Position numbers and translations under genes: made by a program | The notes under the pieces: generated by a model | What the model saw: only the letters and a program-made list of their open reading frames with translations | Told to the model about the DNA's origin: nothing | Database searches by the model: none | Assembly (NCBI GenBank): GCA_021613535.1 | Contig: CP075494.1 | Location: 12,648,001-12,712,000 of the forward strand | DNA length: 64,000 bases | Reading direction: 5' to 3' | Source: Adineta vaga | Lineage: Eukaryota; Animalia; Rotifera | Part shown: in pieces, positions 31,954-44,535 of the stretch | Layout of the letters: each line of letters opens with the position of its first letter | Position numbering within the stretch: the stretch's first letter is position 1

Positions 31954-33825
31954 TTAGAGTTTTAGTAATTTCTTTTTCGTACGTAGGAGATTCTTTTTAC
32001 ATCGTTGTATGTCAGGATCAGTTATCGGTAATGAATGATAAGCAATAGTGATAGCACGTTCATAGTAAAAATGTGCATTAGCATAGTCATCAATGCGTTC
32101 ATATATCATACCAATGAAATCATAGTGAAGTACCAAATCAGGATGATTATGAACGATTAATCGTTGTTTGATTGTGAGCGATTTTTCAAGATATAACAGT
32201 GCTTTTGAATAATTCTTTATTATATAATAGACGGTACCGAGGTTGTTGTATAATTTATCTAAATCGGGATACATGGAAAGAAGTGATTGTTGTTGAGTTG
32301 TCAGAAAATTTTCATAATTAGATAAAACTTCTGTAAAGACGATCAGTTTCCGATGTATTTCATCAATGTTTTCGTACAAAGCAGGTAAATTGGTGTGTAC
32401 ACACGAAAATACAGATTGTTCGAAGATTTCAAGTTCTCTGTCATATAATTTCTTCGCTTCTTCATAACTTCCTGGACTATCTTCTGTTTGAATAGGATGG
32501 TGGTTCTGAACAACTTCTTGTACATTTTTGACTTCGTCCATTTTACGTAGGAATAAATCCAGAGAATCTTGTGCCGTTGGTCCTTTTATTTCTTCTCGTA
32601 TTCTTTCAGCAAAATCACGAAGATTTTCATCAGTATCATTAGTTAGTATTAAATTCACCTCATACAAACAAGCATTATTCTCTGTTTGTTTAATGTCTTG
32701 AATACGAAAAACACTGTTCATCGAAAAGAGTACTTCATCATCATCGTCAAAAGTTCCAACATGACGTATGGAAGCAAACGGGACTGTTGCTCGAGATGGA
32801 TCAATTGTCAAAACATAAAAAACTCCTATCATATTAGGATCACCTTGACAACTTTCAGCATAAAGTAGAGCCACATTGCGATCCTTGGTAGCAGATAAAA
32901 AGTTATTAAATGCAAGTAATCCACCTTTGCTATTTTTCATTTGAATTAAATCAGTGTGTGACATAGATTGACCACGATAAACAGTAAAGATATCATTAGA
33001 TTGATGTTTACCGAATTGTTCGGAATGAAGTTGTGCGATTTGAAGATGGAGATCACGAATGTAAAAGCCCATGATAACAGTGAGAGGAATATTCAAAGTT
33101 TGTAATGCTCGATTGATTATTGGAGACAAATAACAATCACGCGTGTAGCAACTAAGAGGTGTTTGATGAGAGTATTCTTGTTCGAATTTTTTAAGAATTT
33201 CTAGCTTAAGATTGTCTCCAGTAAGTAATTGACGAAAGTGAGCAATAAATTTTTGAAAATGTTCTTTTGTGTAGTCGATTTTAAGCAAGATTTCTATAAG
33301 AATCTGCATCTGCATGAATGAAATATCAAGTTTATTCAAGTTATTCTTTACTGCACTGTGATCAATAGGTTGGTTGAATGCTTCACAAACAGAAGTCATA
33401 TCAGAGGAACAACCTTTTACTTTTGACCATTCATCATTCCATTCTTGATTTTTTGCTTCGTTTTTATCAAAGATAAAGATAGTATGAAGTTGATGAATAT
33501 CATGGATCAAAGGTATGAGCCAATGACTTGATGTATTAGGAATGATTAGAGTTACTGTATCATTCCAGCAATTTGTAAGAAAGTCAATACATTGATCAGT
33601 ATCAGTAAAAATGTTGACAGTGTGAACGATGTTTTGTAGTTGTTTGACATTATTTGGATAATTGTCGTTGCTTATATCAGTATCTTGATGTAGCCAAATG
33701 AGAGAATGATTTTTTTCATGATCAGTTGTAGTTTCTTCTTGTCTAGCATTCAAGGAGTCAGGTACTTGTCGGAATACATCAAATACAGTATCTTCTGAAT
33801 TTGTCATAGTGACAGTCGTTGTCAT
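31954..33825 (-). CDS. Intronless ADP-ribosyltransferase-domain plus TPR-repeat protein
   Basis: 623-aa ORF. ART R-S-E motifs VYRGQ, FNNFLSAT, DDEVLF; C-terminal TPRs (LYNNLGTVY...YSKALLYLEKSLTI...HPDL). Confidence 0.88.
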   Translation of the reverse strand: MTTTVTMTNSEDTVFDVFRQVPDSLNARQEETTTDHEKNHSLIWLHQDTDISNDNYPNNVKQLQNIVHTVNIFTDTDQCIDFLTNCWNDTVTLIIPNTSSHWLIPLIHDIHQLHTIFIFDKNEAKNQEWNDEWSKVKGCSSDMTSVCEAFNQPIDHSAVKNNLNKLDISFMQMQILIEILLKIDYTKEHFQKFIAHFRQLLTGDNLKLEILKKFEQEYSHQTPLSCYTRDCYLSPIINRALQTLNIPLTVIMGFYIRDLHLQIAQLHSEQFGKHQSNDIFTVYRGQSMSHTDLIQMKNSKGGLLAFNNFLSATKDRNVALLYAESCQGDPNMIGVFYVLTIDPSRATVPFASIRHVGTFDDDDEVLFSMNSVFRIQDIKQTENNACLYEVNLILTNDTDENLRDFAERIREEIKGPTAQDSLDLFLRKMDEVKNVQEVVQNHHPIQTEDSPGSYEEAKKLYDRELEIFEQSVFSCVHTNLPALYENIDEIHRKLIVFTEVLSNYENFLTTQQQSLLSMYPDLDKLYNNLGTVYYIIKNYSKALLYLEKSLTIKQRLIVHNHPDLVLHYDFIGMIYERIDDYANAHFYYERAITIAYHSLPITDPDIQRCKKNLLRTKKKLLKL

Positions 33826-34422: not shown

Positions 34423-35538
34423 ATGAGTGCCAGTTCGGTAATCGCTTTTTCAGTTCAATTCAATCGATATGCATCAATTCCAGTATTTATCTGTGGTATT
34501 ATAGGAAACATTTTCAATATTTTGATCTTCACACGTCCACGACTTATCAAAAATCCATGTTCAACATATTTCTTTTGGGCATCAGTTGCCAATATAAATG
34601 TGTTACTATTTGGCTTAGTTTCACGCTTTCTATCCGATGGTTTTGGTATCGATCCAGTTTCGAACAATTTAGGATTTTGTCGATTTCGATATTTTATTCT
34701 TCATTCCTCAATGACTCTTTCATCATGGTTTACTATTCTCGCTGGTATTGATCGTTACTTTGTTAGTTCAAGAAGTGCTCGTCGACGACAACTGAGTAAT
34801 TTGACAAACTCACGCTATCTTGTTGCGTTAACAACATTTACTGGTTTAGCTGCATATTCTCACGCACTAGGTCTATTCACAATCGAAATGCTGAAAACTG
34901 GACCATCTTGTTATGCACAAAGTGGTACTTATCGAATCTTCTATGATTTCTTCTACTTTGCGACCTATAGTTTTACACCACCAATCATAATGATCGGTGT
35001 TGGTTTGGCAACATTTCATAATATTCATCAATTACGCTCGCGAGTAGTGTCTACAGCAACGAGTGAGAGAAATCATAGTCACTTGAAAAGACGCGATCGA
35101 CAATTGATTAAGATGGCTCTTTTACAATTTATATGTACAGCTATTTTAACATTACCAATTGCAATTCAAAAAATATATGCTACTTTTACTCAAAATATCA
35201 GCAAAAATGCTTATCAATTAGCAATTGAAAGTTTTATTACTCAATTGATGAGATTGTTTGTATTTATCAACTCGAGTATTAGTTTCTATGTGTAAGTAAA
35301 ACAAAACCTTTCTATAACTACTAATAAGTGTATTGTTGTTAGATTTATTTCATCAGGAAGTGGATTTCGATATGAATTGGGAGGGATTATTGTTGGATCT
35401 GTTCGATATATATTTGGAGAAGATAGTCGATTGTACGGTCAAATGCAAAACTACTTTGAAACTTCGATTGTCATTAATGTCGATCATTTGAATAGAACGG
35501 CAACTGTCGTTCGCAATAATGTCAAACTTGACAGTTGA
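34423..35538 (+). CDS. Class A orphan GPCR, copy A (2 exons)
   Basis: GIIGNIFNILIF, NPCSTYF, FCRFR, IDRY, TM6 LTLP. Intron after TAT GT|gtaagt; exon 2 from 35343 gives FISSGSGFRYEL...KLDS*. Confidence 0.9.
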
Positions 35539-35811: not shown

Positions 35812-37715
35812 ATGTCGTTTCTAAATTGCTTCATGGCTGACGAAATACTAACTGAACGCTTTCTTGATGCTGCTGATGAGCCTGAACAAATCTTAACGCC
35901 AGTCGATGAATATCAATATTCTCCTCTTGTTTCAGTAAAAGAAGCGATGGAACCAATTAAATCGCTAATTCATAATTGTGATACAGTGATTGACACAAGA
36001 TGAATCAAGTGCCACTCAACTTTATACAATGCAATGGTCCAAATCACATCGAAATTCATGCACTTTACTGAATGAAAGTCTTCGTTTTGAAGATCGAAAT
36101 TCTCTTAAACCATGGTTTCTTTTTCTGAAATTATTTTTAACTGCCTTGTACAAACTTCCATCATACAAAGGAACAATTTGGCGTGGTGTTCAAGGAAATT
36201 TATCTAATCAATATAATGACGAACATTTTTGATGGGGAATAAGTTCATGCACGAAAACAATGCCGACGATTCAAAAAATTTTGCGAAATGATGATTTTCG
36301 GACTGTTTTAGAATTGAACGTATCTATGGAAAATCAATTCAATCTCATTCGTATTTTAAGAGAGAAAATGAAGTTGTTCTTCGTCCTGAAAGTTATTTTC
36401 AAGTTGTCAGGAAATGGAAAGCAGCAAATGATTTACAGACAATTCATCTACGCGAACAAGCTCCACCATTTGAAACACTTGTATCTCCTTTACCGTCTTC
36501 AGAATTAGCAATACTATTAGCAGAGCAGAGAAGAAACTTGTATCAACAAACAATACAACATCGAACACATAATATCGTAAGTTCTTTTCATTCATTGTTG
36601 TAGTAATAGTTTTGAGGAGAATGATAAAAGTTATTACATTAGACAATTATTAGTTATAATAATATAAAAGAGAATAAGAAGTCAAGAGAAAGATTTATTC
36701 ACTCAAAATATTACTTTGGGAGTACACAAAATATATGGTGCAGAAAGAAAGATAGAACGATTTTGCGAGAATTTTTGTTTTATCCTATGTATCGACAAAT
36801 TAGTACTTTTTAGTATTAAAACTTAAGAAGTGGAAAGGATATGCTGTTACTGTAGCTGGTGGACACAATCGTGGAGAAAGGTTAGATCAATTATGGTGCC
36901 CTCATCGAATCTTTGTTGATGCAAACAAATCAATTTATATTGTGGATTCTTGGAATCATCGTATTGTTCAATGGAAGTATTATGCACGAAGAGGAAAGAC
37001 TATTGCAGGAGGAAATGGACGAGGAAATGGACTAAACCAACTGAATAAACCAGTAGATGTGATTGTTGATCAACGAAATCATTCAATAATCATTGCTGAC
37101 AAAGGCAACAGACGTGTGATTCAATGGTTAGATCAAAATCAACAAATTCTTATTGAGAATGTTCATTGTGGTGGTTTAGCAATCGATAGGTATGGATATC
37201 TTTATGTTTCTGATTGGGAGAAAGACGAAGTGAGACGATGGAGAATAGGAGAAGACAAAAAAGGGACATTAGTAGCTGGTGGTAATGGAAAAGGAGATCA
37301 ATTCAATCAGTTCGATCGACCTATTAATATTTTTGTTGATGATGAACAATCTATTTTTGTCTCAGATACGTCGAATCATCGTGTGATGAAGTGGAAACTA
37401 GGCGCAACAGAAGGTGTAATAGTGGCCGGAGGAAATGGTCAGGGAGACCATCTTAACCAATTATCTTATCCTAGAGGATTAATCGTGGACTTCTGTAACC
37501 AGGTCTATATAGCAGATTCAAGAAATAATCGAATCATACGTTGGTGTGAAGGACGAAGTAATGGTGAAATTATTGTTGATGGATCCGAAAAAGAATATTA
37601 TTCTTGGCGACTGTCTTATCCTACTGGTTTATCATTTGACTTAGAAGGAAATCTGTATGTTTCAGACTGTAATAATCATCGAGTTCAAAAATTCCAATTG
37701 TTAACTCGTAAATGA
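35812..37715 (+). pseudogene. ADP-ribosyltransferase plus NHL-repeat gene; ART half disrupted, NHL exon (36814-37715) open
   Basis: RFLDAADEP...LTQDES..QLYTMQW...LKPWFLFLKLFLTALYKLP...IWRGV...F*WGISSCT...ENEVVL. Frameshift near 35990, premature TGA at 36230-36232, further frameshift near 36310. Six NHL-type repeats downstream. Confidence 0.85.
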
Positions 37716-38046
37716 AAATATTTTGTAAAGAGGAAAAGAAGAGTTTCGATGAAACTTATTGAATTTTGTATTGAAATAAAATCAAGGATTACAGTTAATT
37801 AAAATCTTTCTTATAATATAATACTTGTATGAGTAACGTTTATTTAATATTTCTATAATTCGATCTATTCTATCGCACACATATATTTATACAATCGTTC
37901 TTCAATGTACACGAAACAAAATTATTCATCCATTACATTGGTTTTTTCCTAACGAATTTCTTTCCTACTACTGACTAATTCAGTGTCTATCACAGTAAGA
38001 ATATAAGTAAATATCCAACACATTCTACACGCTTATCTTCATTTAA

Positions 38047-39565
38047 ATGACGACGCCAAAGAATAAAATTCAATGTTTTACATGTAATAAAGACAGAATT
38101 ACTTATTTTTGTAAAGGATGTTCAAAAGAATTTTGTTTATTCCATTTAACACAACATCAACAAATATTAAGTGAAGAATTAAATTTAATGATTGATGATT
38201 TTAATCAATTTAAACAAACAATTAATGAACAAAAACAAACTCATTTAATGATAAAACAAATTGATCAATGGAACAAAATTTCAGTTGAAATTATCCCACA
38301 AATAACTGAAGAGTACGGAAAAAATGTTATTCGAGAAGTAGAAATATTTCTTAGTAATATTGAAAAGAAATTAAATTATACAATTGAACAAATTGAAGAA
38401 ATTCGAGGAGAAAATGATTTTAATGAAATCAATTTAAGTTATTTAAAAGATCAGTTAAGTGAAATGTCAGAAGAATTCGATAATTTAATCAATCTTTCAC
38501 TTGAACAAAACTTACAATCATGTCTTAAAGAAATCTCAAGTAAAAAGGCGATCAGTAAGTTAGAAAATAATTCCATTTCTTTCATCTTTACGGTAGAAGA
38601 GTTATCTGTGTCGATAATATCTTTTGTATTCTTCAGAAACAAAATTTATCAAATGGGAAGAGTATGGTGAGACTGTCGCTGGCGGAAATAGATATGGGTC
38701 CAAATCAGATCAACTCAATGTTCCTTGTAGTATCTTCATTGATAAAAACAAGACTATGTATATTGCCGATTCGTGGAATCATCGTATTGTAGAATGGAAA
38801 TTGGATGCAAAAGAAGGAAGAACTGTTGCAGGTGGGAAAGGAAAAGGAAATCAGATGGATCACTTGTCCAATCCAACAGATGTAATTGTTGATCAAAGAA
38901 ATAATTCATTAATCATTGCTGATTGTGAAAATAGACGTGTTATTCGATGTTTAAATCAACAGCAAGAAACTCTGATTACGAATATTGATTGTCATCATTT
39001 AGCAATAGATAAAGAAGGATTTCTTTATGTTTCTAAGCGAGAAAAGAATGAAGTAAGACGATGGAAAATTGGAGGAGAAGAAGAAGAACAAGGAATATTA
39101 GTGGCTGGTGGAAATAAGAAAGGTAATGGAATGAATCAACTCAATCGTCCTTGTTTTATCTTTGTTGATGATGAACAGTCAATTTATGTATCAGATCAAG
39201 GAAATCATCGTGTGATGAAGTGGAAAAAAGATGCAAAAGAAGGTACGATTGTCGTTGGAAAATATGGTCAAGGAAAGAATTTGAATCAAGTATCGTATCC
39301 TGCGGGATTAAGTGTTGATTCGTTGGGTCAGATCTATATAGCCGATTTTGGAAACAATCGAATAATGCGTTGGTCTGAAGGAAACAGTCATGGTGAAATT
39401 ATTGTTGGTGAAAATGTCAAAGAAGGAGAATCAAATCAATTATGTCGTCCTATTGCTATATCGTTTGATTCTGAAGACAATCTATATGTTGTAAATTGGG
39501 GAAATAATCAGATTCGAAAATTTTCGTCCGTATTGAATGAAAATCTTTTTTGCACCGATGAATAA
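38047..39565 (+). CDS. B-box-like zinc finger, coiled coil and NHL repeats (TRIM-NHL-like); intron 38555-38636
   Basis: CFTC...CKGCSKEFCLFHLTQH, heptad-rich region, then repeats such as TVAGGN..G...QL..P and YIADSWNHRI. Confidence 0.9.
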
Positions 39566-40740
39566 AAGTGGAAAAACAATCTCACGAAAGAACAAGTAAA
39601 CTACAACATCAATTTCATGGGATCAAATGAACAGGAGCGTAACATCATTTACGAAATATTTCAATTTAGAATTTGTTTTAAAAAAGACAATGAAAATATC
39701 TGACGTAAAAGTTTTTTAAATAAGATATGTTTGTATATGATTATAATTGTTGTAAATCTCTTTTTATAAATATAAATTGAATTCTATCCGATAGAAAATG
39801 TTTCTTTAATAATATTTGGAGAAAAAAAAGTTTTCTTTTCAAATTAATGATCAATGCTAGAAAGAATTATTTCGGGACGTTTCATACTTGTTTGTTTTCG
39901 AACCAGGTTAATTACTACTATCTCTCGAATTATATATGTACGCAATTATAACTACTTGAAAATCACACGCTTATACTTTCAAAAGAAATATGAATATTTT
40001 TGAGTGTGAATATCGATAGCCGCTATAAACCCACACCCTCAAGATGCAGGCTGGTGAATAGATCTCCTTCTTCACTCACTCTTATTCAGTTTATTGAGAA
40101 ATCGTTTCTATTGACATTTAGCTCAAGACTTTATTAGAATCATTTCATAATCACTGATGGTTAGTCGTCAATCTCACTATATCGAAATGATGAAAAGCGG
40201 TAATAGTTGTTAAAGGAAATGTATGTAACAGGAAATCAAATCAATCTACAATTCAAATACTTGAAGTCATTGTATTATGCAATGACTATGAAATTTAAAA
40301 GAAAGAGAAGCTAGTGCAGGTACAAACAGAAGTAAATAAGAATTAACTCTTGAGAATTTTTATGCAAAAAAACTTATTTCATCGAAATAAATGCTATTAC
40401 TTTTAGAGGTAAAATTTTCCTATAAAAATTTACAGGTATTATCGACTGTGTAGTTGATCTCTGCCAAAGAAAAAGGAAAGGTTGTGAACTTATAAGACTG
40501 ACATTCCTGCTCTTTCAAGAATATGATTGTATGAAAAGGAGCTTTCCATTTACTTTTATCAGTAAAAACCATACTTATCAGTAAATTCCACTGTCTTGTC
40601 AAAGAGATAACTATGAGTCAAAGTGTCTTGCTGGAGAAAACCTGCATTATTGCTATCATTTATTGAAATCCTTCCTCACTATTATAAAAACCTTAATCCA
40701 AGAAAATAAATCACACAGTACGGATACACAAGAATTTCTA

Positions 40741-42523
40741 ATGACTACCTCTACAGATCAAACTCTGACAAACGAATCGACACGTCAGCTTGCACTAATT
40801 ATTGGTAATAGTGATTATCATATGGGCGATCACTTACCGAATGCTCTTCATGATGCCAAAGAAATGTTTTCGGTATTAAAAAATATTGGATTTCTCATCT
40901 TTGACAACAAAGAACACATCGATTTAAAACAACACCAATTCCAAAAAACAATCCTCGACTTTCAGTCTTCAATAAACGAGAATGATATACTTGTTTTGTA
41001 CTACTCTGGGCATGGCAGACAATGGAAAGTAAGAGAAAATAAAACGAAAGAAATCGATCTAAATTTATTTTTAGAACAAAAACTATTTAATTCCAATCGA
41101 TAATTCACTTGAGGATAGAAAAGATGATGCAACTACAAGAATAGAACTTCATGGATCTGATTTAGAATTCTATGCAATTGATTTAGAAGCATTGTTAAAA
41201 AATATTAACGAGAATAAACCATTTGCGACATTTGTATTCTTAGAATGTTCAAGATATTATTATTTTCGTGATGAAAAATGGGAACTCAAACCTCTCCCTC
41301 AAGGAATGACCTCAATGCATATACCAATAAATTCATTAATTACATTTTCTTGCTTACCAGATCACATTACCAATATTGAACACAAAGACTCTATCTTTAC
41401 AAAATCTCCTGTAAAACACCTACAAATTCCGAATAGAGACATTCGAACAATTTTGTCTGATGTTACCAAGGAAGTATTGAACGAAACCAATTCAGAACAA
41501 AATCCGTACGTTAGCTCTACTTTGACACACACAAATATATGTTTGTTTCAACAAAAACGTAAAAATAAAATAGTGAAAAGAAATTATATTGAACACATCG
41601 TTTGTATTTTTTCCATTCATTTAGAAATCAAATTCCAACAATGGAAACAACATGCAACTACAGTTGCTGGCGGAAATAGAAGTGGAAGTCAGGCGAATCA
41701 ACTTCGATATCCTCATGGAATCTTTATTGACAAAAACAATTGGATTTATATTGCTGATCTAGGAAATCATCGTATAATAAAATGCAGATGTTACGCAAAA
41801 GAAGGACAAATCATTGCAGGTCGAAATGGACTAAGCAATGAAATCGATGAATTAAGATATCCAACAGATGTGGTTTTTGATGAAAAAACACAATCATTGA
41901 TCATTGCTGACATAGGAAATAAACGAGTCCTGGTCTGTTCCAATTATAAAAACGAACAAATCAGTATTGATGATATCTTGGGTTGGAGTTTAACGGTGGA
42001 CAAAAAAGGATCAATCTATATTTCTGATGTAAAGAAACATGAAGTCATTCGATGGAAGAAAGGTGAAATGCACGCAACAGTTGTAGCTGGTGGTAATGGA
42101 ATAGGTGATCAATTAAATCAACTCAATTATCCAACCTTTATCTTCGTAGATGAACATGAATCTGTTTATATATCAGACTGGAAAAATCATCGTGTAACAA
42201 AATGCGTCAGACAAGCATCAGAAAGCATCGCCGTAGCGGGTGGGAACGGTGAGGGAAGTAACCTGAATCAATTGCGTTATCCTCAAGGATTATTTGTGGA
42301 TCAATATGGTCGAATCTACATTGCTGACTTTGGAAATGATCGAATAATGCGTTGGTGCGAAGGTAAAAATGAAGGTGAAATCGTTGTTGGGGGAAATGGA
42401 AATGGAAATCAATCAAATCAACTCAAGTTTCCTACTGGATTATCATTTGATTCGGAAGGAAATCTTTATGTTGCTGATTCAAGAAATCATCGCATTCAGA
42501 AATTTGAAATTATTCAGGATTAA
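40741..42523 (+). CDS. Caspase-like (peptidase C14, para/metacaspase-type) domain plus NHL repeats; introns 41029-41074 and 41559-41624
   Basis: LALIIGNSDY...LPNALHDAKEM..VLKNIGF, YYSGHG, NYLIPID, FVFLECSR, SIFTK, V..ETNSEQNPY, then six NHL repeats. Confidence 0.9.
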
Positions 42524-42531
42524 GAGTAGCG

Positions 42532-42569
42532 TTTTTTTTTTTTGGGGGGGGGGGGGGAGGGGTTGGTGG
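42532..42569. repeat. T12-G14-AGGGG homopolymer tract in the 3' UTR of the caspase-NHL gene
   Basis: Directly visible. It lies between the stop (42523) and AATAAA (42592). Confidence 0.8.
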
Positions 42570-43398: not shown

Positions 43399-44535
43399 AT
43401 GTCGAATATAAGTTTTATCAAAGATATCATTGTTGATATATATCGGTATGTTGGAATTTCACTATTAGTTTTTGGCTTAATAGGAAATATTTTCAATCTT
43501 TTAATATTTACACGATCTCAATTGATAAAGAATCCATGTTCAACTTATTTCTTCTGTTCATCCATTGCTAATTTAAATGTTCTCATATTTGGTTTATTCT
43601 CACGGATTCTATCTGATGGTTATGGAATCGATCCTAGTTCATATAATTTAGAATACTGTCGATTTCGTTATTTCATTCTTCATTCATCTATGGTATTAAC
43701 ATCTTGGTTTACTATTCTTGCTGGTATTGATCGTTATTGTGTAAGTTCAAAACATGTTCACCGTCGACAGCTAAGCAATTTGAAATATTCACGCTATCTT
43801 GTCTGTCTCACAGTATTCATTGGTTTAATTGGATATTCTCAAGTGTTAGGAATGTTTATCATTGAACAAATCAAAACTGGTCCATCTTGTTATGCACGAG
43901 CTGGTACTTATCGAATCTTCTATGATTTCTTTTATTTTGCGACATTCAGTTTTACACCACCAATAATGATGATCATAGTTGGATTAGGAACATTTCACAA
44001 TGTTCAACTATCCCGTACACGTATCAATCCTACAGAAACAAATACTCAAAATATGAATCAATTGAAAAAACGTGATCGTCAATTGATTAAAATGTTACTT
44101 GTTCAAGTTATTTTTACAGTTTCTTTAACATTACCATTGGCTATTCAAAAGCTTTATTCAACATTTACTCAAAACTTTGTCAAAGATTCGTACCAAGTGG
44201 CGATAGAAGGTTTAATTACTCATATAGTCCGACTACTTGCATTTACGAATAGTTGTATCAGTTTTTACATGTAAGTAAAGATCATATGGTTATCTATGGT
44301 ATATATTAACATGTTTTTTTCTTTTGAATATAGATTTACTCTGTCCGGAAGTATATATCGAAAAGAATTTATTGGACTTTTAAATAAGGTGACTGGTTAT
44401 ATATTTGGTAAAAAGAATTTAATAGATCAACAATCGCAAGAATGTACTGAATCAATGAAAAATATACAATTAAAAACGATAAATGAGACAATAATACCAA
44501 AGAAAATGGCACACAATGTAAATCGTACAGCATAA
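43399..44535 (+). CDS. Class A orphan GPCR, copy B (paralogue of 34423-35538)
   Basis: Same motifs (KNPCSTYF, CRFRYFILHSSM, AGIDRY, GTYRIFYDFFYFAT, RDRQLIKM) and the same phase-2 intron in TM7. Confidence 0.9.

Follow-up and report, generated by a model that had tools for sequence, protein, structure and literature searches.

A 64-kb stretch of the genome of the bdelloid rotifer Adineta vaga (positions 12648001-12712000 of contig 5, C5, CP075494.1; hereafter the window, within which all gene coordinates are counted) carries three neighboring genes on one strand, each of which begins with a different kind of domain and ends in an exon encoding an NHL propeller. We propose, with a probability of roughly 0.7, that this trio is part of a large bdelloid-rotifer family of two-module proteins composed of an N-terminal head and a C-terminal NHL propeller, the propeller being encoded on one 3'-terminal exon and the head on one or more separate exons. 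In the course of evolution the NHL exon behaves as a cassette, passing from gene to gene by copying or conversion, and the breakpoints lie within the shared intron or where it ends. The propeller would act as a diversifying ligand-recognition module, and the heads as output or oligomerisation modules (ADP-ribosylation, proteolysis or scaffolding, death-fold signalling, oligomerisation), together providing a germline-encoded recognition repertoire that is most plausibly related to innate immunity or cell death. The window itself contains an old array within this family, consisting of an intact B-box-like/NHL gene, a paracaspase/NHL gene whose catalytic Cys is replaced by Ser, and an ADP-ribosyltransferase (ART)/NHL gene whose head has decayed.

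The assembly comprises 100.8 Mb in six chromosome-size contigs, and the window is approximately 31% G+C with very short introns. Our census covers 45 NHL exons, 42 from fetched loci and three from the window. Exons were searched and folded separately and never joined into a spliced protein, and the broken ART head was read in separate pieces; the Pfam cut-offs were 20 bits for NHL, 21.4 for Peptidase_C14, 22.3 for ART (PF01129) and 27 for B-box. For the RNA check, three small contig sets were available from sequencing runs that are presumed (not recorded) to be RNA. Exactly three NHL exons lie within the window, all on the plus strand, at 36814..37715 in gene 1, 38637..39565 in gene 2 and 41625..42523 in gene 3 (Pfam NHL 2.6e-26, 1.1e-26 and 7e-37, respectively), and together with the six-bladed family model described below they bear out the initial annotation of this DNA, in which three same-strand genes with a homologous six-bladed NHL exon had been recognized. 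The same annotation had pointed to identically placed acceptors, and indeed those at 36814, 38637 and 41625 are all in phase 1, two nucleotides and five codons ahead of a conserved Trp. This arrangement extends to the whole family. A phase-1 acceptor is found at the homologous place in 40 of the 45 NHL exons (binomial 1e-14 against a one-in-three expectation), one NHL subgroup merely lacking three residues after the acceptor. The phase-1 donors at 38555 and 41559 also held up, and across the family 37 of 43 heads have a donor in this phase (binomial 1e-12 against the same expectation), 31 of these 37 being at most one mismatch away from GTAAGT. Because all head classes end in phase 1 and the NHL acceptor is in the same phase, any pairing of head and propeller stays in frame. 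Two ART-NHL genes taken for intron-less (L049 and L068) were rejected as such, since short in-frame introns with phase-1 donors are present in both.

When used as queries against the genome, the three NHL exons gave 913-998 first-look places, counts that may exceed the number of exons because the propeller is internally repeated, and 128-132 matches were scored, all with E < 1e-68 and most without stops. The A. vaga NHL family has at least 132 confirmed exons and probably several hundred. The heads are numerous as well: the zinc finger/coiled-coil head gave 204 first-look places (142 matches scored or listed), the ART head 233 (152) and the paracaspase head 42 (18). Within the census the propeller follows an ART head in 17-18 of the 45 cases (two subtypes, ART-a and ART-b), a B-box-like head in 14, a caspase head in six and a Cys-rich head without a Pfam family in five, while a DED-like head (sub-threshold), an ART-like head with TPR repeats and a head of unknown type were each found once. 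The NHL-linked heads represent at least six unrelated classes. Public proteins were searched with the read-through open reading frame (ORF) at 41192-42520 of the window, scored on its NHL part only, and 5333 proteins from Adineta, Rotaria and Didymodactylos were found at E <= 1e-20; the closest belong to the bdelloid rotifers Adineta steineri, A. ricciae, Rotaria and Didymodactylos, and some proteins of the family are named arginine ADP-ribosyltransferase and carry both PF01129 and PF01436. NHL has been listed among the expanded repeat families of Adineta vaga (PMC3846280). Our literature search, which left many papers outside its reach, yielded none that deals with the joining of heads to NHL, with the splice joint they have in common or with the hypervariable face described below.

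The initial annotation had named strict clustering of NHL exons by head as the outcome that would speak against swapping, and this is not what the exons display. When head type was mapped onto a maximum-likelihood tree built from 44 NHL exons, it had to change 20 times; the smallest possible number is 7, and shuffled labels averaged 25.9. The five caspase-linked exons are all separated from one another on this tree, as are the five ART-b-linked ones, and only the Cys-rich class is clustered. A young clade of 16 NHL exons sharing 85-96% DNA identity is spread over five chromosomes, where its members stand behind caspase, zinc finger, ART-a and ART-b heads; NHL exons with 90-96% DNA identity occur behind all four of these unrelated head types. 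For 91 of the 92 cross-head pairs in this clade, the block that can be aligned opens 14-126 nucleotides (nt) ahead of the acceptor they share, and its other limit falls at -33 to +194 nt relative to the stop. Heads and propellers also differ in apparent age: in two caspase genes the synonymous divergence (dS) is 0.39 between the heads versus 0.044 between the NHL exons, and three ART-b genes have identical heads and NHL exons that differ at a nonsynonymous divergence (dN) of 0.056-0.079. In these sequence comparisons the NHL exon thus travels, or is converted, as one piece, whatever head precedes it. At the ART-b loci L042, L064 and L069 (contig 2, 629-715 kb), the heads have a dS of 0 and the introns and NHL exons differ by 3-5%, and here it is the head that looks like the most recently homogenised part. 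The Cys-rich-head/NHL genes L051 (C3:105726-110316) and L052 (C5:119186-123776) have identical NHL exons and sit on different chromosomes, each approximately 0.1 Mb from the chromosome start, which suggests a recent subtelomeric duplication.

How the exons changed partners is a matter of two processes that leave similar traces. It is possible to imagine that the head-NHL fusions are ancient and fixed, each head type having acquired its NHL exon once, and that later gene conversion among NHL exons produced the incongruent tree. Most cross-head homology limits hug the exon edges (-14 to -60 nt before the acceptor and +3 to +31 nt after the stop), which is the outcome expected where conversion depends on pre-existing homology, and the pairwise homoplasy index (PHI) test indicates recombination among 15 young exons (p 0.01); with the eight exons of the chromosome-2 array the same test gave p 0.39, 52% of site pairs being incompatible at all distances. 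The tight limits favor conversion for most cross-head pairs, and physical shuffling fits much of the pattern equally well. Other evidence is less easily reconciled with fixed fusions. The caspase gene L033 and the ART gene L036, located 11.7 kb apart on contig 2, have 2476 nt in common at 96.4% identity, a block that consists of a 1.38 kb intron, the NHL exon and the 3' flank. The intron of this block is not pre-existing exon homology, and the alignment shows at least one event with a breakpoint deep in the intron. Within their long "intron", two caspase genes and an ART gene also have a candidate 72-nt exon rich in Ser, Thr and Lys, in phase 1 at both ends, with a good polypyrimidine tract and a GTAAGT-like donor (oriented coordinates 3005-3076 in L033, 3006-3077 in L036 and 2241-2312 in L039). 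Furthermore, a phase-1 joint that is universal over at least six unrelated head classes needs repeated joining at the exon level, and even whole-exon conversion gives a head a new recognition surface, a functional outcome equal to that of shuffling. For these reasons we regard fixed ancient fusions as unlikely, and prefer a cassette-like NHL exon that is either copied or converted between genes. The recombinational swapping of heads and sensors that the initial annotation had envisaged is supported in this form for the family; its picture of the trio as a working set of effectors is not. The three NHL exons of the trio have 50-59% protein identity among themselves and 71-74% DNA identity to their nearest sampled relatives, and those of genes 1 and 2 are sisters (Shimodaira-Hasegawa-like approximate likelihood ratio, SH-aLRT, 91) though their heads are unrelated; within the trio the re-pairing is old.

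The family propeller was modeled by AlphaFold as a six-bladed structure with 24 strands (predicted local distance difference test, pLDDT, 94.9; predicted template-modeling score, pTM, 0.92). A Foldseek search with this model retrieved TRIM-NHL and PknD propellers (E 1e-15 to 1e-20), the best natural matches by fold being Thin/TRIM32, TRIM2, TRIM3 and TRIM71 (TM 0.78-0.81, E about 1e-20). With regard to a possible bacterial origin of the propeller, the PknD sensor scores 138 bits by profile versus 117-119 for TRIM-NHL, and by fold TRIM-NHL is closer. A set of 29 hypervariable columns was defined on the 26 older exons alone, and its rates were then taken from the young clade, in seven disjoint pairs. 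At these columns dN is 0.505 and omega, the ratio of dN to dS, is 1.61 (p 0.024), as compared with a dN of 0.041 and an omega of 0.78 at the columns outside them; relative to the dS over all sites (0.07), dN at the 29 columns is 7.2-fold (Fisher 8e-51), and more than half of the amino-acid differences in the seven pairs fall within a tenth of the codons. The dN/dS check on the propeller surface called for by the initial annotation has in this way revealed a hypervariable face. Because unconstrained sites reach at most the silent rate, the excess points to a binding surface that is under diversifying selection or is replaced from templates. The position of the columns is also informative: 25 of the 29 map to a D-A loop, a B-C loop or the opening residues of a strand A, over all six blades, and none is in an A-B loop. 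By standard propeller topology the D-A and B-C loops would form one face of the molecule. It is the face that binds the ligand, RNA, in Brat and TRIM71.

The closeness to TRIM-NHL proteins raises the question of whether these proteins are endogenous regulators, that is, RING-less TRIM-NHL-like proteins that bind the rotifer's own RNAs or proteins and were expanded for bdelloid physiology such as desiccation recovery. Brat, LIN-41/TRIM71 and TRIM2/3 bind the animal's own RNAs or proteins, the rotifer propeller is structurally closest to those of TRIM32, TRIM2, TRIM3 and TRIM71, and the commonest intact architecture among public proteins (approximately 470 amino acids, aa) is a zinc finger, a coiled coil and NHL. 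Against this stand the hundreds of copies, the frequent pseudogenes, heads of cell-death or toxin type (ART, paracaspase, DED-like) and a ligand face that evolves seven times faster than silent sites. High copy number, pseudogenes, head types and the fast face argue for a conflict-driven recognition family and not for conserved regulators, and we consider an endogenous regulatory role decidedly unlikely.

Among the three genes of the window, gene 2 alone looks fully competent, as far as its sequence can tell. Its exon 1 (38047..38554, plus strand) encodes a B-box-like zinc finger followed by three long helices predicted as a coiled coil. The zinc ligands C10, C13, C22, C25, C30, H33 and H37 are kept in nine paralogues, and the ligand pattern of this head family reads C-x2-C-x8-C-x2-C-x4-C-x2-[HD]-x3-H. 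In the structure model of exon 1 (pLDDT 82.5), three short strands are followed by helices at residues 31-65, 67-122 and 127-167. The conserved ligand pattern apart, the B-box assigned by the initial annotation was not borne out: no match to the Pfam B-box (PF00643 or PF22586) was obtained for gene 2 at E <= 0.1, and one paralogue has a sub-threshold ANCHR-like B-box match (16.5 bits against the cut-off of 27). The B1-box of PML resembles the head weakly both by sequence (E 3.7) and by fold (root-mean-square deviation 1.5 over 34 columns, E 1.8), and a fold search with the whole head model was dominated by helical-bundle matches, none at E <= 0.001. No RING finger was found by Pfam in gene 2, whose protein begins nine residues before its single zinc finger. 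"B-box-like" may be a fair label for this head, weakly supported, and does not amount to demonstrated membership. A phase-1 intron of 82 nt (38555..38636), with a GTAAGT donor and a cag acceptor, joins the head to the NHL exon, which has 59% amino-acid identity to that of gene 1. Predicted proteins of other Adineta (468-472 aa) are colinear with the two-exon model, and one perfect contig of the presumed-RNA runs (39498-39687) spans the stop of the gene. Distant relatives of the zinc finger/coiled-coil head (21-27% identity) also occur in clusters on C4 (near 3.99-4.07 Mb, 8.27 Mb and 8.74-8.77 Mb). Their open frames measure 340-435 aa and are not beside NHL matches; here the head may continue directly, with no intervening intron, into a different C-terminal part.

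Gene 3 has a head related to paracaspases, and the caspase-like domain seen in the initial annotation was recovered by Peptidase_C14 on both of its head exons. Exon 1 (40741..41028, plus strand; 6.5e-16, 59.1 bits) encodes the N-terminal half with the His motif SGHG, and exon 2 (41075..41558; 4.9e-6, 26.8 bits) the C-terminal half. Between them, three-frame translation predicts a phase-0 intron of 46 nt (41029..41074, GTAAGA...TTTTTAG) that restores the Peptidase_C14 frame. The predicted second intron (41559..41624) is in phase 1, with a C/GTAAAA donor and a tag acceptor, and its 66 nt are in frame and stop-free, so that a 482-aa open frame of the gene reads through it. A profile search of the PDB with exon 2 alone gave nothing useful. 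However, the ORF of the intron-less paralogue L025 aligns to MALT1 (3v4o, 2.5e-13), with LLDMCR of MALT1 matched to ILDCCR. At these columns gene 3 reads LECSR, which places a Ser at the catalytic Cys, and the paralogue L039 has Trp there. Gene 3 keeps the His (SGHG), and an invariant Cys adjoins the catalytic column but is not at it; by this alignment the head is predicted to be without the catalytic His-Cys dyad. The best paralogue of its NHL exon is 60% identical and located on a different chromosome, as compared with 51-52% for its window neighbors. Directly after the stop, at 42527-42565, approximately 11 T are followed by a G-rich run (approximately 13 G, then GAGGGGTTGGTGG).

The head of gene 1 (35812..36576, plus strand) is a remnant of an R-S-E type ADP-ribosyltransferase. 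It aligns with the intact ART heads of paralogues as three pieces in two frames (tblastn 1.7e-57), with frame changes near 35990-36015 and near 36307-36316 and an in-frame TGA at 36230-36232; in the genome-wide search it is listed with two TGA inside. The best of its pieces in Pfam, the last one, scores 16.5 bits against the ART cut-off of 22.3, where intact paralogue heads score 37-43 bits. The spacer that represents the former intron (36577..36813) opens with GTAAGT at 36577, the one strong donor of gene 1, which is in phase 0 and faces the phase-1 acceptor (tag/TA) at 36814; among the 43 donors examined it is the sole strong one out of phase. With two frameshifts, an in-frame TGA and a donor out of phase, the ART head of gene 1 is a pseudogene. 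The ADP-ribosyltransferase named by the initial annotation is recognizable by homology, but as a broken head. The decay is not ancient, because the R, S-x-S and E-x-E motifs remain legible. The NHL exon behind it is open over 299 codons plus the split codon, and two perfect contigs of the presumed-RNA runs fall on it (37235-37578 and 37557-37798, the latter reaching beyond the stop). One low-depth contig of the presumed-RNA run X9 omits 176 nt with GT..AG ends inside this exon (37188-37363); the omission would shift the frame, and may be due either to cryptic splicing in the transcript of a pseudogene or to the way in which the internal repeats were assembled.

Such features invite a reading of the window alone as a decaying relic array with no current function. 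The head of gene 1 is broken in at least three places, gene 3 is without the catalytic Cys, the NHL exons have no close relatives (71-74% at the DNA level), and contigs of the presumed-RNA runs are sparse and of low depth on genes 1 and 2 and absent from gene 3, an absence that proves nothing here. On the other hand, genes 2 and 3 have stayed open over their entire length during a long divergence, as have the NHL exons of all three genes, and we consider a mere relic very unlikely. It is extremely improbable that read-through transcription lets the phase-1 donor of one head reach the NHL acceptor of the next gene to give chimeric proteins, for which compatibility alone can be cited (all in phase 1, genes 0.3-1.2 kb apart on one strand), since no between-gene joint occurs in any presumed-RNA contig set and one long "joint" from 37472 to 39357 is a paralogue mis-alignment (55 foreign letters between, a side of 23 letters).

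Several genes around the trio and elsewhere are worth recording. Just upstream, on the minus strand (31954-33825), a 622-aa ORF combines an ART-like region with TPR repeats (TPR_12, 1.8e-14); the ART-like region has 25% identity with the L016 head (E 2e-16), and the ORF represents another head-plus-repeat gene with a TPR sensor instead of NHL. At L045 (C1:13082796-13087380) an ART-like plus TPR head runs straight into NHL in one frame of 687 aa without the usual intron, and a Peptidase_C14-like piece lies further upstream. The trio is also flanked on either side by single-exon paralogues of the rhodopsin-family seven-transmembrane (7TM) receptors, at 34423-35295 (plus strand, 7tm_1 2.4e-10) and 43399-44274 (plus strand, 4.8e-14).

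A number of observations weigh against the interpretation of the trio as part of a diversifying family with exchanged propellers. The 45 exons of the census are those most similar to the NHL exons of the window and not a random draw, and two of the three heads in the trio appear, from their sequences, not to be catalytically competent. None of the three presumed-RNA contig sets contains a contig across a predicted junction of the window. The omega of 0.78 at non-variable codons is high, and the young clade may be partly relaxed; the hypervariable codons have an elevated dS as well (0.31), and templated micro-conversion or multi-base changes could contribute there in place of selection on point mutations. 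Taken over the whole exon, omega is above 1 (median 1.18, up to 2.2 in the closest pairs), and no single pair is significant (p 0.09-0.3). A role in defence is plausible, the hypervariable propeller face being the one finding that strengthens it.

The family can be compared with several known systems. With TRIM-NHL proteins (TRIM2, TRIM3, TRIM32/Thin, TRIM71/LIN-41, Brat) it shares the six-bladed NHL propeller and, in gene 2 and approximately 140 relatives, a B-box-like zinc finger and a long coiled coil placed before it. In contrast to them, the rotifer family is without RING, its B-box is unrecognised by Pfam, its copies number hundreds instead of a handful, its propeller face is hypervariable, and its head is replaceable by ART, paracaspase, Cys-rich or DED-like domains. 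TRIM5alpha and fish finTRIM are expanded, positively selected TRIM families with variable loops in the B30.2/SPRY domain and lineage-specific tandem expansions. The common design is a B-box/coiled-coil scaffold with a C-terminal recognition domain whose surface loops diversify, whereas the recognition domain of the rotifer proteins is NHL and not B30.2, and their heads are interchangeable enzymes or adaptors. NLR/STAND-type effector-repeat proteins (caspase-like, ART or Death-fold heads with LRR, TPR or WD40 repeats) are similar in carrying a cell-death or toxin head on a repeat sensor and in belonging to expanded, clustered families whose domain combinations are re-dealt; however, the rotifer proteins have no NTPase switch between head and sensor, their sensor is NHL, and head and sensor meet at a single conserved phase-1 intron joint. 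MALT1, a C14 paracaspase, is the best relative of solved structure for the caspase-like head (2.5e-13), which keeps the His motif and a Cys motif LDxCR, but the rotifer head is without Death or Ig domains and fused to NHL, with Ser in gene 3 and Trp in L039 at the catalytic Cys.

Two further comparisons concern the mode of exchange. In classical exon shuffling as formulated by Patthy, modules bounded by phase-1 introns recombine in frame, and the candidate 72-nt linker exon of phase 1-1 common to caspase and ART genes resembles such a module. The rotifer unit differs in being a 3'-terminal exon exchanged within one intracellular-looking family, in events that are recent (4-6% divergence) and probably driven by conversion. 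The VLR of lamprey and the immunoglobulins (Ig) of chicken are diversified somatically by gene conversion from cassettes. There, too, blocks that encode the binding surface of a repeat protein are copied between loci, but the copying in rotifers would be germline and evolutionary, with no dedicated deaminase or assembly machinery implicated. What appears to be new here, as judged from the genome, is the combination on an NHL propeller of a TRIM-like or effector-repeat recognition family with phase-1 exon exchange, the related principles being already known elsewhere.

A broader and more tentative reading, which we hold to be possible yet rather doubtful, is that bdelloids possess a receptor system of immune type that would have no described counterpart in animals. 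In it, several hundred NHL propellers with a positively selected ligand face would have their exons continually re-dealt among toxin-like, protease-like, death-fold and oligomerising heads via a universal phase-1 joint, through gene conversion or recombination in introns. Should the family interpretation hold, the NHL propeller would join the short list of folds that animals have made into diversified recognition repertoires (LRR, Ig and B30.2), and exon shuffling via a single phase-compatible intron would be a recent and repeated process. Ectopic gene conversion has long been known to be common in bdelloids; here it would be pairing receptors with effectors anew in an animal that lacks meiotic sex, and an asexual lineage would be generating its receptor-effector combinations by ectopic recombination instead of sex.

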